The notes under the pieces: generated by a model | Seen by the model: the letters and a program-made list of their open reading frames with translations, nothing else | The model's database searches: none | Told to the model about the DNA's origin: nothing | Position numbers and translations under genes: made by a program | In this document: piece by piece, positions 38,070 through 46,226 of the stretch | How positions within the stretch are numbered: position 1 is the first letter of the stretch | How the letters are laid out: every line of letters starts with the position of its first letter | From: Trichosphaerium sp. ATCC 40318 | Lineage: Eukaryota > Protista > Tubulinea | Assembly: GCA_038496445.1 (NCBI GenBank) | Contig: JALMLS010000234.1 | Location: 13,797-77,796, forward strand | Length of the DNA: 64,000 nucleotides | Reading direction: 5' to 3'

Positions 38070-39501
38070 TTACATTTCGTCATCGGATGGTGCATCTTCT
38101 TGTGCAACAACATAAAAGTCTACAAAACTCAACTCTCCTACACAGGCGGGAAAAGTCAGTGATGACCAAAATGGTAAAAATAGAATAAATCAAAAAAAGT
38201 AGTGATTTGTTTGTTGTTTTGGTATAGCCGCTTTAGTTACTTACCGTCTTCTGTTGGTATCATATGCTGTATGTTAAGTAACCCACGAGCATTTAGGCGT
38301 ATCATCGTTTTCTTAGCACTACCAAGTGCTTTTAGGCAAGGTTGTAATAGTTTTAACCGATATCTAAATATGGTCATTAAATCAAAAAAGGCCGGAAAAA
38401 CCGAATGTGTCGTACTCAAAAAGCATATCTTGTGTGCATTCAAAAGACTCAAAAGGTTCAGAATCCTTGTTATAATCAACAGCAAGGCTACCAGTAGCAC
38501 TTACAGTCTTAAGCTGAAAATGAGGGTCCGTTCGTGCAATACGCAAAGAAGCAACGCTATTTGACCAATCTAGCTCTCCAAATGCGTCTCTAAGGGCGTC
38601 ACTCTACATTAAAGTCAACCAAAGCGCGTAAAACACAATTTCAATAAAGAAACACTACCAGCCTCAAAAAACTAATAAAAACCTCTCCATTACCTTACCT
38701 TCATTATAACTTTGGCTGTCTGTGGTGCTGATCGTAGATTAAATACAGGAGAAGCGAGTGAAGGCTCTTCTGTATGTATTGTGCAATCAGTCAGTACGTC
38801 ATTTTCCTCAAGCCTAAATCTAAACGTAAGAAAAAACTGTCTCAGTTCTTGTTGGTTTTCTTCACGTGCAATACAAGTAGTGGATTTCCGTGACCTTTGT
38901 ATCCCATTTGAAGTGCTGGGAAGCTTGATGGAGAGTTACCATAGATATCAAGGCAGCTTAGAAGTGCTAAAAGCAAAATTAATCAAAAATCCTTAGTATG
39001 CTTCTTTTATGTCTTTTTTGGCGTAGCAAAGGTGTTTTACGCACCATGAAGGCTAACTGCAAAGTCTACATTGTCACTTTGGCTGTTAAAGTTGTATTCT
39101 TGAAACAGAGTATGCGATAGCATTGTACTGCCCTATGAACGCGTTTAGATAAATGAGCGGTTTATTTTTTGAATATTTGTTTTTTAGTGGAAAGGCAACA
39201 ATTTATGCGTATGATTCTTTGGGCGTACTTGCATGGCTTGTTTCTTTTCTACGCTACATTTTATACCAGCAGCCGAAACATTAAACGTTACGCTCTACAA
39301 ACGCGTTAGTACTTGTATCAAGAGCTCCAGGAATAAACATACGCAGTTTGGGTCATACTGTAACGTTTTAAGTAAACCAGAAAGTGTACGCGCGTTCTCC
39401 ATCTTCACAAGCAAAGTAAACTTCACAGGGCCTGCGTCTTGCGTTGGTTTGGCTGTGATTGATTGGGAAAGGTTTTGCGATATTGAACCGGCTGTGTACA
39501 T
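38070..39501 (-). CDS. RAD1: RAD1, 9-1-1 checkpoint clamp subunit
   Basis: ENARTLSGLLKTL, GIKCSVE...MQG, LFQEY, LLSCLDIYG, KVIMKSDALRDAFGELD, YRLKLLQPCLKAL...IRLNARGLLNIQHMI and FVDFY. Confidence 0.92.
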
Positions 39502-39624
39502 GGTGTTACGCTTGTGTTTGTATTAGATCGAAATTTCTGTGCTGATAGAAAACCCACGACAATTTGTTACTTCTGAGAAAAACGCCATCAATAAGCGCGA
39601 AGTATGTCATTTTTGCGTTGAGAC

Positions 39625-42600
39625 ATGTCAAAGAACAGCTCAAGCACCGTAAAAAGTACCCCGCCCAAAAGGAAGAAAACGTTGGGTGTAAGGAGGAGAA
39701 TTGGTACTACTGGAGGATGGAATAAGCGTGTAGCGACACCAAAAGCGGAATTTGATGATGATTGGCAAAGTAGCCGCAATATACCCAAAAAAGTGCCTGA
39801 GGCGTTCAATATACAATTATCAGAGGTGAGTAAGCGTTATTGGCACTTTTTTAAATTAATCAGGAACAACGTGCTGTTTCCAAAGCTATTCATCGCGGAA
39901 AAAGCATATTCTTTACTGGCAGCGCTGGTACAGGTAAATCGGTACGAATTAGTTGATACAAACCAATTTCAGTTACTTTGATGCCTACGACGATAATATT
40001 GCTGCATTTCGCGTTATAATTATTAACGGTCCCACTAGACGTTGCTTCGATACATCATTAGAACATTACCGGACGACACAACCTACGTAACGGCTGCAAC
40101 AGGTGTTGCTGCAGTAACTATTGGTGGCATGTACGTCAAAAGGAAAAAAACTTGCACGGCTGACACTTTGACATTCAGGACGATTCACTCGTTTGCTGGT
40201 ATTGGTTTGGGTAGAGAAAATAAACTAGCACTTGCTGAGAAAGCACTAAAGTCGCGGGCAAAGCAGTACTGGCAGAAATGTAAAGGTACAATGAAGAGTT
40301 AATTAATCACGTTTCTTTTGTTTTTATTTTATTCTCAATTAACATGTTGTCCTTAGTGCTCATTATAGATGAAATATCCATGATTGATGCGGATCTAATG
40401 GATAAACTTGATTATGTTGCTAAGTATATACGACAAAAGAAAGAACCATTCGGAGGTACACACGTTTTCTTGTAGAGTTTTTGTTTTGAACTGTTTTTTT
40501 ACTTGGTTTGTAGGCATTCAGCTTGTATGTTGTGGTGATTTTTTCCAGTTACCGCCTATCAATAGATCAGGTCCTAATGGTGAAGTAATGTTTGCTTTTG
40601 AGTCAAAGGCGTGGAATGAAACAATACAGGAATCGTTTGAGTTGACACAAGTTTACAGACAAGTAAACAACAAAAAAAAAAAGTGCAATCATTGCCTAAC
40701 GTTGTTGTAGAAAGGAGACAATGACTTCATTAAGATGCTGAATCAAATACGTCATGGTCAGTGTAAATCATCAACCAAACAGATGCTTGAAGAATGCTTG
40801 TACAGAAAACTAGATGAATCAAATGGCGTTCAACCTACACATCTTTTCGCTTTAAACAAAGATGTTGGTACGAAGAAAAAATGAACTTTTTATTCATCTA
40901 GGTTGTACTAATGTTACTTCTTTTAAAGATAGAGAAAACTCTAGTAGGCTTACAGAGTTAACAGGACAGACAGTATTGTACAAAGCAAAAGACAGGTACT
41001 ACCAAGTGAATAAATGCAGTTTTGTTTAAACTTCAATAGAGGTGCAGAACCTTATATAAGTCAAATGAAACGGCACTGCCAAGCTCCTGAAGAATTACTA
41101 CTTAAAGTTGGAGCCCAAGTCATGTTGCTCAAGGTACGTTGATTACAAGAGAGTTTTAACATTCTTATACGATCATTAGAACACAGATGTTAAGAGAGGT
41201 TTGTGTAGTGGAGCAAGAGGTGTTGTGATTAGTTTTGACAAGACAAAAAAGCGTCAATACCCTATTGTTAGAGCACGTGTCTTTTTTAGTATTTAATGAT
41301 GATTAATTAACTATGTATTATTAATATTGGTGTTTAGTTCGCTAATGGAATAGTTGAGACTGTTGAACTGACTAAGTGGGAAGTTAATGTCGCTGGGAGA
41401 GATGTGGCTGTACGATTTGAGTTCTTTTGTTTTAGTTGTGTCCACAGGAGCTTATTTAGTATTAGACACGTCATCAATTACCTTTGAGGCTCGCATGGGC
41501 ATTGACAATACATAAATGTCAAGGTCAAACTATTGAACATGCAGAGATGAAGCTTGATAATGTCTTTGAATAGTATGTTCATCTTTTTAGCATTCTGTCT
41601 GTTACTAACTATTTCATTGTGCAGTGGTCAAGCATATGTAGCACTATCACGTGTATCTTCGTTGAAAGGATTACGATTACTTTCTTTTGACTCAAGGATA
41701 ATTCGTGCGCACCCTAAAGTACTCATGTTCTACAAGGTACAGCATCAAAAGAACATTTTGTTCAACTCTTTATTTTTAATGTCTATTCTCACTTTATTCT
41801 CCTTCAGCGCTTTGATAATTACAAAAAACCACTTCAAAAAAATAAGCCGTACGTCTCGTGAATTCGTTGCTAAATAACGTGCTAACTTTGAGCTTAATTT
41901 AGTACGAAAACATTTGTAAAAAAAGCACCAGCCAAGAAAAAACCCACTAAGAAAACACCACCAAAACCTGCATCTTCAACAGTACGTCTAGATAATCCAC
42001 TCCCATAGCTAGGTATTTTCGTTTCTGATATATTGCAAAGCCCTCAGGTGGAATGTTTGGACGTGGTGGCTTCAAATTCTCGCTACCAACAACAAGAACA
42101 CAACCTGTAATTTCACCAGACGAAGATGAAGATAAAGAAGAAGAGACTGAAGATAAACACATGAACGATGCGGTTACAGCAACACTTATACCTGTTGATA
42201 CACCAGAAGAATCGGTATGTTTATTATGCTAAGATATATGCACACTGAAACAAATACAATAGGACGAAGAAGAATCTAGTGAAGATGAAGAAAAAAAATC
42301 AATTGATATTTTCAAGTTGGATGCAAAGCGAAGTGCTTTGCGTACTGGATTTAATTCATATGCTAATAGGTGAGTATTATTCACAGTTAAAAAACCCAAG
42401 TAATAATTTATTTGTTAGGCAACGTCCACCACTCAAAGGAAAGAAACCGCTGCCTGTTGGTAAACCGAATTGTCTTACTGGTAAAGCATTTGTTGTTACT
42501 GGTGTTTTGGAGTCCCTTGAACGAGAAGAGGCTGAAGCACTTATCAAACAGTATGGAGGGTACGTCATAAAGAATTACGGGAAACGATTGATGATTGTGA

Positions 42601-43957
42601 TTGTATCTAACTGTTCCTCGTTAGTCTTGTTTTCAAATCAGTTGCTAAAAAGGTTACACATGCACTTGTTGGTGATCAATATGGAATATCTAAAATACGA
42701 ACAATTGTTGATAGATATATACCTATTATAAACGAGGATGGTTTATTTAAGATGATATCTACATTGGCTGAAGCCAAACCTGTAGAGAAGAAAAAAAAGA
42801 AACCAACAAGAAAAAGGTAAGACTCACTTTGTTAAGTTGAGGTATTAAGTCATTGTTTTAGGAAGTCTACGTCTCCTGTAAAACCAGCTGTGGAGTGGCC
42901 TATACGTAGGAAGACATCACCAAAGTCTTCTACAAGGCTGAAATTGGAGGATTTTGATAACCAACCGAGAGTAAAGAGACAAAAGACTGATGATATTGTT
43001 TCTATTGATTTGACTGATGACGATGATGTTATGACTGATATATCTGATTCTAGAAATCAAATGGATTCAAGAACAGAGTCTATTATTGCAAAACATATGG
43101 GTATAGATAAATCAAAGGATGGACATAGTATAGCACAAGAGATGAGTGAATGGTTTGATGATCCAGATGAACTTGAAGATATTCTCAACAAAACAGTTTT
43201 CCAACCTAAAAAAAAAACATCTACCTCTACACAACAAACACATAAAACAAACAAAGTTATCGATGATGACGATGACAAAGACACTGTTGATGATTTTTTC
43301 AGAAAATACAAGACAAAAAAAACAAACACAACAACACCATCGCCGAAGAAAGAAAAACCAGAATTTTTGAAGAAAAAAAAAGAAGACAAAAAAGATGGAT
43401 TCTCGAGTGCTAGGGTTACTAAAGATACCAGCGAAAAAAAGACGAGTATTTTGGATCTATTAGAATCTATATCAGATGACGACGATGATATTGATATTGA
43501 TGCATTACTTGCAAGTCCACCGAGAACACAAAACTCTAAGCCAACTAAAGAAGACGAGAAAAAAGACTCTACTAACATTACTGTTGATGCTTTATTGGTA
43601 GATGATGATAGTGATAGTGATAGTGAAGCTGAGTTTGCTAGAGTATTAGCAAAGTACAGAAAAGATAAAAAAGAAGCTACTGAAGAGAAAACAGAGAAAA
43701 AAGATGTTAAGTCTTTAAAAAAAGCTGCAAAAGAAGCAGATAAAAAAAGAGTACTACTAGGCACGTGATTTTCGCGGTTTTCCCTTTTTATTGCCTATGA
43801 CTAACTAGTTATGTTATCTATAGATGATATTGCAAGTGCGCCAGTGTTCTCAAAGAGGGAAGCAGTGATTAGTGCAACAAAGAAGAAAAAAAGAAAAAGT
43901 CTAATACCCGCTTCTAAAAAAGCTCTTTTTGATTCAGATGATTCTCTTGACTTTTAA
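39625..43957 (+). CDS. PIF1: PIF1 5'-3' DNA helicase, apparently fused to an RFC1-type BRCT domain and a long acidic/basic tail
   Basis: [64 protein letters not shown] and GQAYVALSR; reading frame continues through GT-AG introns into [32 protein letters not shown]...IINEDGLF. Confidence 0.85.
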
Positions 43958-44361
43958 AACTTGTATCATAAATAAAGAGGATTTACCAACTTGTAAACTG
44001 AATTGTTTATTGTGAGAGCCTCTTAAAACTTGACATCTTCAAATACACTGAAATCAGAAAGTAAAAATTACAAGGTTTATCATACAATGAGAAGTTAATG
44101 TGACACTTATTACTGTCTCTTCACATCTCAAGTTCGCCCTTCTTAGAGGCAGCGGGTGTCACCACAACAATCTCGAGTGCCAACAGCGACAACCTCAGAA
44201 CAAAATACCGATGCCTCTCAGTTTGGTGTAACCAGTCAAGAGCTGATACGGTATTAACAACCTCACATAAAATATATCTGCTATTTGTTTACCCAAAATG
44301 TTGAGTCAAATGATTTTCTATCCGTGCACAACTTAACCACTAAAGGGATACCGAAAACATC

Positions 44362-46226
44362 ATGTCGTACAAGCTCTTGTTGATTTGTTTTGTTTGGGTT
44401 TATCCTAGGGTACGATGATTTACGTTCTTGTCGATTTTTTCACCAACTATAGATACTGTGCTGAAAACGTTGTTATTGATACCTCTCGCGTCATTGCTGA
44501 CACTGGTACAAAGTTTATTGGTGCTGGGTGCGCAAGATTCAACTTATTCCAAAACCTTTTCAAAATCACGTGATTAATAATTTAGATGGGAAGTAGAGCG
44601 TGTTTTAGCTCAAGAAGAATTTTTGACAAATAAACAGTTTCAATATTTGACGCGTCAAATAAGCCCAGGCGTTCTTCGTGTTGGTGGTATATCAGCAGAT
44701 TTCGTCCGCTATGACTTGAAGAGTAGTATTGGGTAAGTTCTGGAGACTCACTTTGAGAAATCTCATGAGAAAACGTGGTTCTTTCTAATTTTTTTTACTA
44801 TCTAGTGCTGGCGATTTTCCTATTCCAATAAAGGATATGCCTGTTTCTGTTTTCAAAAAAATAGTTGATTTCGCTGAAGCTGCTAATCTTGATTTCTTGT
44901 TCGACTTGAACGAGTTATATGGTCGTAATTGTACAACTTCAACTTGTACTGGACCTTGGGATACAAGTAATCTAGAGTCCTTTTTAAATTACCTAAAAGA
45001 AAATAACATTGGACCTATTCATGGGTTTGAACTCGGCAATGAGTTGACCCGTAAGCCTCATATATCTATTGAACAGAATATCCAAGATTACAACAGGCTA
45101 AATAAGATATTCACGGCTATTTGGCCGAACAACAAACCTCTTATTTTTGGACCGAGCACAAATTACTGTGACGAAGATGTTCAAAAGTTTATGTCAGGAA
45201 CGAAGTCTTTTTTGAGTGGTTTTACGTATCATACGTACCCTGCTGGTGATGGAACTACTCTTGCACAAGATTTAGTAAGCGCTAATTGGCTAAGAAATAA
45301 TATTTTAAAGCAAGACAAACAAGCTAATAGCAGTGGTTGTGTTAGCATTTGGAAACAAATAGGTACAAGGTGTTTTTTTTTGGTTCCACTTTAAAAAATC
45401 TCGTCCTGTTATTCCTCGGCTCTTATTTATACTCTAAGGACAAGCGAATGATATTAAACTATGGATAACTGAAACAAATTCTGCTTATAAAGATGCTGGC
45501 GGGGTACAATCTTAAAAAAAGACCAACCATCTCTTTGATTTTTCATCTTAATTTTGCATTTAGTTTACTGGCATGTTCCAAAACGGATTTTGGTATATTG
45601 CTTCCCTTGGGCAATATGCAAGCTCAGGTGTTACACTACACGCAAGATGGGCGCTTACAAACCATGATACATTGGGTCTCATAAACCTTAGAACAACACC
45701 TATATCAGGTACAACAAAACGAAAATTTTAAAAAAAAACACAAATTAAGTTAACGCTATTTAAGTTGCTCCTGACTACTGGCCTGCCGTATTATACAAGC
45801 GAGTCATGGGTACCAAGGTATTGGGAACTACTACAGGTAATCACTGCTTTGTTAGAGCTATCAAACCTCTAAAGACCTTCTTTAGATAGCAACGGACAAG
45901 TGTTGGCTTATGCTCATTGTGCAAGTTCTTCTCAGTCTCAAGGCGCTGTTGTTGTCATGTACGCAAACCCAGGACCTCTAATAATTACTTTGAATATATC
46001 TGGATTCAACGCAATGTTCCCAAGAAATGAGTACATCTTTACGGCAGACACATTGCAATCCACTGTTTCTAAGTTAAATGGACAAAAACTTCTACTTGGA
46101 TCTGATGGTACTTTACCTCCAATGCAGGCGAAGGTGGTTACATCTGGAGACTTTGTTGTACCTCCTAGATCATATGGGTTTGCTGTTTTCCCTTCAGCGG
46201 GTGTTGCTGCATGTGCTGGCAAGTAA
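44362..46226 (+). CDS. Secreted GH79 heparanase/beta-glucuronidase-like enzyme
   Basis: Signal peptide, SPGVLRVGGISAD, FLFDLN, FELGNE (acid/base), LWITETNS (nucleophile), PDYW and LAYAHC. Confidence 0.88.

Follow-up and report, generated by a model that had tools for sequence, protein, structure and literature searches.

A PIF1 helicase gene of Trichosphaerium sp. ATCC 40318 that probably continues into an RFC1-type BRCT region

The locus described here raises the question of whether a PIF1 helicase and an RFC1-type BRCT region, coded one after the other on the same strand, are products of one gene or of two. It lies in a contig of Trichosphaerium sp. ATCC 40318, and the stretch analysed (positions 13797-77796 of the contig, 64,000 nt) is called the window below. 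The assembly is 70 Mb long and has G+C content of 37% and introns of 38-120 nt. A preliminary description of the window had proposed a domain-shuffled PIF1 fused to the BRCT domain of RFC1. According to the predicted frame, domain matches, and splice signals, the locus is probably one gene of 21 exons, which codes for a PIF1 helicase fused to an RFC1-type BRCT region and a tail, with a product of about 1066 amino acids (aa).

The region 39000-45000 was read in three frames, with the reading anchored on splice sites. The spliced model obtained is free of stops, runs from 39625 to 43957 on the forward strand, and has 21 exons, 3201 nt, and 1066 codons. Its frame remains open past the ...HPKVLMFYK at the end of exon 13 (41736) and leads onward through the introns to the TAA at 43955-43957. 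Such a continuation had been described earlier as crossing GT-AG introns; the open path was recovered as described, but the last intron is GC..AG, as confirmed by RNA. The codon-usage score picks the model frame in 21 out of 21 exons, linker exons included. Retention of intron 14 would end PIF1 with YVS and the stop TGA at 41857-41859. Sequence and profile searches of the spliced model were run exon by exon, and exons were joined only for local translation, alignment, and trees. No paralogous copy of the whole locus was found in the genome. The features of the model are as follows.

39625-41736, + strand: PIF1 helicase core, exons 1-13, residues 1-478, from ATG 39625 to ...HPKVLMFYK; exon-wise Pfam matches, PDB matches, and RNA-confirmed introns.
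41737-41807, + strand: intron between exon 13 and exon 14, GT..AG.
41808-41848, + strand: linker exon 14, Lys/Pro-rich; codon usage of the model frame, consensus donor GTACGT at 41849.
41849-41902, + strand: intron 14, with GTACGT donor, CTAAC branch motif, and TAG acceptor.
41903-41981, + strand: linker exon 15, Lys/Pro-rich; codon usage of the model frame, stops in the other two frames.
41982-42040, + strand: intron 15, on which the join depends; donor GTACGT, single CTGAT branch motif (branch A 42028).
42041-42214, + strand: exon 16, acidic linker, contains ATG 42053; strongest coding score in the model frame, RNA contig 42086-42213 spliced to 42263.
42263-42369, + strand: exon 17, acidic run and beginning of the pre-BRCT segment; preceding intron 42215-42262 RNA-confirmed, alignment with the foreign RFC1 segment F/W-x-S-Y/F...PP.
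42419-42559, + strand: exon 18, pre-BRCT segment and first BRCT half; matches to 2K6G/2K7F (3e-11), yeast Rfc1 (8e-7), and Pfam BRCT (22.3 bits).
42625-42816, + strand: exon 19, second BRCT half and Lys run; Pfam BRCT positions 35-78.
42862-43760, + strand: exon 20, 299 aa, charged low-complexity tail with motifs like the SUMO-interacting motif (SIM) and the PCNA-interacting peptide (PIP; TVDDFF); X1 RNA contigs 43208-43496 and 43559-43757.
43761-43823, + strand: GC..AG intron; an X1 RNA contig joins 43757/43760 to 43821/43824.
43824-43957, + strand: exon 21, tail end and stop TAA; an X1 RNA contig reaches 43937, AATAAA at 43971.
42768-42778, 42919-42935, and the 43865-43869 region of the protein model: listed positions of the SIM-like and PIP-like motifs of the tail.

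Exons 1-13 encode, as predicted from motifs and profile matches, a complete PIF1 helicase of superfamily 1B (SF1B). Both ATPase motifs of the PIF1 family are present, namely Walker A GSAGTGKS in exon 2 and motif II LIIDEISM in exon 5, and the translated model also has the Pif1 signature stretch between motifs II and III. Pfam PIF1 (PF05970) was matched by exons 2, 5, and 6, and Pif1_2B (PF21530) by exons 9 and 10. Exon 6 matched the yeast and human PIF1 structures with E-values of 1.7e-11 and 2.3e-8, respectively. The full helicase core, with Walker A, motif II, signature stretch, and 2B domain, is thus common to this protein and to yeast Pif1/Rrm3, S. pombe Pfh1, and human PIF1. Known family members have only disordered N- or C-terminal extensions, and none is known to have a BRCT, whereas the protein of the window, if fused, would add a C-terminal extension of about 590 residues that includes a folded DNA-end-binding domain. 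Within this half, intron 41279-41337 has the unusual donor GTCTTT, which is required to hold the PIF1 frame (..YPIVRAR joined to FANG..) and is outside the RNA contig coverage. Elsewhere in the genome, two PIF1-like matches (C88:20029-20331 and C430:20189-20491) have identical scores and internal stops and may represent a duplicated or transposon-borne PIF1-like gene. More PIF1-like matches were found on contigs C10, C22, and C4.

The other half consists of six exons, 42041-43957, with an RFC1-type BRCT region and a charged tail of 360 residues. Exon 18 aligns with residues 17-60 of the NMR (nuclear magnetic resonance) structure for the BRCT of human RFC1, 2K6G/2K7F (E 3e-11), and with yeast Rfc1 (8e-7). 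The alignment begins at 2K6G residue 17, i.e., in the pre-BRCT segment ahead of the BRCT core, and the RFC1-like segment noted in this place by the preliminary description is thereby supported. Pfam BRCT (PF00533) gave 22.3 bits for the first half (profile positions 2-32) and 15 bits for the second (35-78); in a six-frame scan of the genome, this locus received 33.4 bits. The pocket positions T-G, R, and S-K are retained, and GISK and the T-G/R stretch align with human VITGVLESIER and with the conserved SK of RFC1. The phosphate-pocket residues of human RFC1 are presumably T415, G416, R423, and K458. The pre-BRCT and core alignment and the pocket positions are therefore common to the window copy and to the BRCT region of RFC1/RFC p140 (human residues 375-480; yeast Rfc1 in 7TFH and others). 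Over the core, the window copy and the RFC1 BRCTs of other organisms share 53-67% of their residues, so the domain is under constraint.

Of the two BRCT halves, that in exon 19 is the less conserved. An exhaustive HMMER search with this exon, carried out on 1.84 billion representatives, returned 13 matches, all of them RFC1 proteins or short fragments. The full-length matches are without exception RFC1 proteins in which BRCT, AAA+, lid, and RFC1 C-terminal domain occur together. In the window gene, no AAA+ module or lid follows the BRCT, as exons 20 and 21 match no Pfam family and the gene ends at 43957. The RFC1 C-terminal domain (PF08519) is absent as well, with the single match of the genome located on contig C4. 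The next gene downstream (44363-46226) is predicted to code for a GH79 glycoside hydrolase, heparanase/beta-glucuronidase-like, with an apparent signal peptide (Pfam PF03662, 4.6e-18 on 44837-45391). The missing RFC AAA+ module had been reported correctly, and so had the charged low-complexity tail. Because AAA+ module, lid, and RFC1 C-terminal domain are all wanting, the gene is predicted to carry an RFC1-type BRCT without the clamp-loader ATPase, and its product cannot be a clamp-loader subunit.

For the tail in exon 20, neither a homologue in word search nor a Pfam family was found, and exon 16 had no relatives in word search. The SIM-like and PIP-like (TVDDFF) motifs of the tail are regular-expression matches only (DNA about 43000-43600). 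They stand behind the BRCT in the window gene but ahead of it in the RFC1 of the same genome. A Lys run and hydrophobic-acidic motifs like those of the tail also occur in N-terminal regions of RFC1, both in this genome and in other protists (P0005, P0009). Srs2 of yeast is a helicase with a C-terminal PIP-like box and SIM, by which it reads SUMO-PCNA; it is UvrD-like, belongs to SF1A, moves 3'-to-5', and has no BRCT. The window model resembles Srs2 in a disordered C-terminal helicase tail with short PIP-like and SIM-like motifs. It differs from Srs2 in the branch of the superfamily (SF1A UvrD-like and 3'-to-5' in Srs2) and in its BRCT.

Does the genome have this BRCT also where it would be expected? 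The preliminary description had asked whether the RFC1 of this genome keeps its BRCT, and it does, though in divergent form. The gene is located on contig C4 (C4:425700-430000) and has the pre-BRCT segment, BRCT, AAA+ module, and the only PF08519 match of the genome. Its BRCT was detected in two halves (Pfam 0.004 and 0.002) and is 46% identical to the window copy and 32-43% identical to foreign RFC1s. It has S-G and K where T-G and R stand elsewhere, and it forms a long branch in the tree. Because RFC1 still has a BRCT, the window BRCT is, by comparison of the two loci, an additional copy and not one relocated from RFC1. The BRCT is split by an intron after Y-x-G and before the next G, with the same place and phase in the window gene and in RFC1 of C4. 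The motifs VSIDLTDDD and KKRVLLD are also common to both, before the BRCT in RFC1 and after it in the window gene.

A third RFC1-type BRCT was found on contig C37 when the genome was searched with exon 18 (L027:8690-8947; 2K6G 5e-13). Its pre-BRCT segment (ANRxxPPLxGKKPLPxGxP) is nearly identical to that of the window. It lies about 2.7 kb downstream of an exon of a FANCM/Hef-like helicase (L027:3961-4182 vs. PDB 9EL5, 1e-10) on the same strand, with low-complexity exons between them (C37:306700-312100). In a small tree, the three BRCT copies of the genome group together (87/90, with the caveat of long branches), and the window copy has the shortest of the three branches.

Are both halves expressed? 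Two RNA runs with partial content for this stretch were available, and their contigs were placed at ≥99% identity. The RNA contigs confirm five introns: 40131-40178, 40663-40710, 40868-40928, 42215-42262, and the GC..AG intron 43761-43823. Three letters are ambiguous at the RNA junction of the last one, and the frame is kept only with the GC..AG placement. Because introns are confirmed on each side, both halves are transcribed and spliced. These data bear on the idea that the BRCT and tail are a decaying, functionless remnant of a partial RFC1 duplication and that the link to PIF1 is read-through noise. Such an idea would fit a tail of low complexity without relatives and an architecture found in this genome only. 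It does not agree with six exons that stay open over 545 codons, with two introns of the BRCT half, one of them GC..AG, spliced in RNA contigs, or with a window BRCT that is closer to foreign RFC1s (53-67%) than is the BRCT of RFC1 on C4 (32-43%) and has the shortest of the three branches. A remnant is regarded as very improbable.

How the halves are joined depends on the acceptor of intron 15. The fused frame needs the acceptor AAG at 42039-42040, and all three stop-free paths use the intron 41982-42040. The alternative acceptor CAG at 42046-42047 shifts the frame and gives a PIF1 stop TAA at about 42108 (538 aa), and retention of intron 15 gives an in-frame PIF1 stop TAG at 42006-42008. Past the sole branch motif of this intron, the nearest AG is the AAG at 42040, at a distance of 12 nt. 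Acceptor use was surveyed in 274 kb, comprising the window, a piece of C4 (L002), and 20 further 10-kb pieces, on introns whose donor was strong, whose branch motif was single, and which were flanked on either side by a long open frame. Of the AGs lying 9 nt or more past the branch A, the first was the frame-keeping acceptor in 21 out of 22 informative introns, and six of the 21 acceptors were AAG. In general, the introns of this genome place a yeast-like CTRAY branch motif 9-20 nt upstream of the acceptor and obey the first-AG rule strictly, with AAG making up about a quarter to a third of acceptors in the sample. Acceptor 42040 is expected, because the genome uses the first AG past the branch site and AAG acceptors are common.

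An open path of this kind rarely arises by chance, as only 16 out of 2000 dinucleotide shuffles (0.8%) of 41737-42052 allow any stop-free, in-frame spliced path from PIF1 to BRCT. Introns 14 and 15 have the consensus donor of the gene, GTACGT, together with the CTAAC and CTGAT branch motifs, and they extend to 12 nt before ATG 42053. Therefore, no room is left for a terminator, promoter, and 5' untranslated region of a second gene. No AATAAA was found on the + strand between 41009 and 43971, a signal that is too inconsistent in this genome to place 3' ends. The FANCM-like helicase on C37, which likewise has an RFC1-type BRCT downstream on the same strand, was also counted as support for a single gene.

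Several observations weigh against a single gene. The RNA contigs of both runs leave 41040-42085 uncovered, join included. A position-weight matrix made from the 16 other introns of the gene scores the acceptor at 42040 as -2.8, below every training intron, and the CAG at 42047 as 4.4. Codon 5 of exon 16 is an in-frame ATG (42053), such as would be required by a separate gene. No protein with both PIF1 and BRCT was found among the nearest BRCT relatives in the exon 19 search of 1.84 billion representatives. The link of FANCM and BRCT on C37 is itself only a candidate fusion. Two further searches gave the same picture: the BRCT region of RFC1 protein P0001, compared with proteins of 393-1251 aa, matched RFC1s only and no PIF1 with BRCT, and searches of full-text literature returned no description of a PIF1-BRCT fusion. 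The protein of the window is itself absent from the 1.84-billion protein library.

These points would suit two products. PIF1 would then end after the linker exons, either at the TAA about 42108 through the CAG 42047 (538 aa) or at the TAG 42006-42008 through retention of intron 15, and a separate BRCT protein of 544 aa, driven by an internal promoter or made from an overlapping transcript, would have its start at ATG 42053. In a mixed version, both acceptors would be used, and PIF1-only and fused isoforms would be made. In favour of two products are the acceptor scores of the matrix, the in-frame ATG 12 nt into exon 16, the position of the join outside RNA coverage, and the searches that found no fused relatives. 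On the other hand, they need a second AG past the branch site, which was used in one out of the 22 informative introns of the survey, and a promoter within the last exons or introns of PIF1. The reading frames of PIF1 and BRCT would overlap by about 58 nt, and the PIF1 mRNA would have five introns past its stop or else an unmarked polyadenylation site inside the BRCT exons. Two products, the mixed version included, are thus considered unlikely. The gene-only matrix as an argument against the fused frame was set aside as under-sampled, with the wider survey showing that AAG acceptors are common. It is also possible that the A-runs of exons 14-15 contain an assembly error in homopolymer length, by which the frame could be restored with the acceptor at 42047.

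The single gene of 21 exons is hence the reading preferred here. Of the earlier proposal of a domain-shuffled PIF1, the complete helicase and the RFC1-type BRCT stand, and one gene is made more likely by the quality of the introns, the rule of the first AG, the codon usage, and too little space for a second promoter. We infer that both halves are carried on one mRNA.

The protein expected from this gene would begin with the SF1B PIF1 (residues 1-478). A disordered linker of about 120 residues, first Lys/Pro-rich and further on acidic, would connect it to the BRCT region (about 600-708). This region would consist of the pre-BRCT segment and core with the T-G...R...K pocket residues and would be followed by the charged tail of 360 residues. 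The BRCT part probably originated when the 5' portion of RFC1 was copied specifically in this lineage. As summarised in a cryo-electron microscopy (cryo-EM) report on RFC (PMC9293004), the isolated human RFC1 BRCT region binds DNA with a recessed 5'-phosphate with a dissociation constant of about 10 nM. In whole RFC, the BRCT caps the 5' duplex held on the shoulder of Rfc1 AAA+ (PMC9293004). The RFC1 BRCT acts with this shoulder in full RFC (PMC9293004), whereas the window protein is without such a partner. Because the isolated region binds such ends in vitro, a function of the fused protein at 5' ends, nicks, and Okazaki junctions, as proposed in the preliminary description, is plausible by analogy, and so would be a tethering at 5' ends, nicks, or gaps. 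The BRCT region would hold the protein at recessed or nicked 5'-phosphate ends, for example at a downstream Okazaki fragment, in repair gaps, or at resected breaks. The 5'-to-3' motor of PIF1 would then be placed to peel the strand from its 5' end, and the tail may supply contacts to PCNA or SUMO.

The C37 locus is similar to that of the window in the order of its parts, a DNA helicase followed downstream on one strand by an RFC1-type BRCT; it differs in that helicase and BRCT are about 2.7 kb apart. A broader explanation would be that the BRCT region of RFC1 was copied at least two times onto the C-termini of two helicases, PIF1 and FANCM-like, and that helicases directed to 5' ends and gaps arose as a small class, while the BRCT of RFC1 itself drifted. 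This explanation is put forward tentatively, and we hold it to be somewhat less probable than its opposite.

What is new at this locus is the combination of two well-known modules, and its value is limited by the unproven join and by the single genome. What is known of PIF1 recruitment to Okazaki flaps, break-induced replication, and gaps concerns mostly PCNA and disordered tails. If the fusion is true, joining of PIF1 to the one BRCT type known to grip recessed 5'-phosphate ends would point to direct recognition of 5' ends as a loading route of PIF1, and the protein would be a natural, ready-made construct for testing such loading. The cryo-EM work on RFC raised the question of whether tight binding of 5'-phosphate by the RFC1 BRCT region in isolation serves a separate function (PMC9293004). 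That a genome reuses the region with no clamp loader attached suggests that it does. If the region was copied to two helicases, this would be a natural experiment in which the RFC1 BRCT region serves as a portable targeting module for 5'-phosphate ends.

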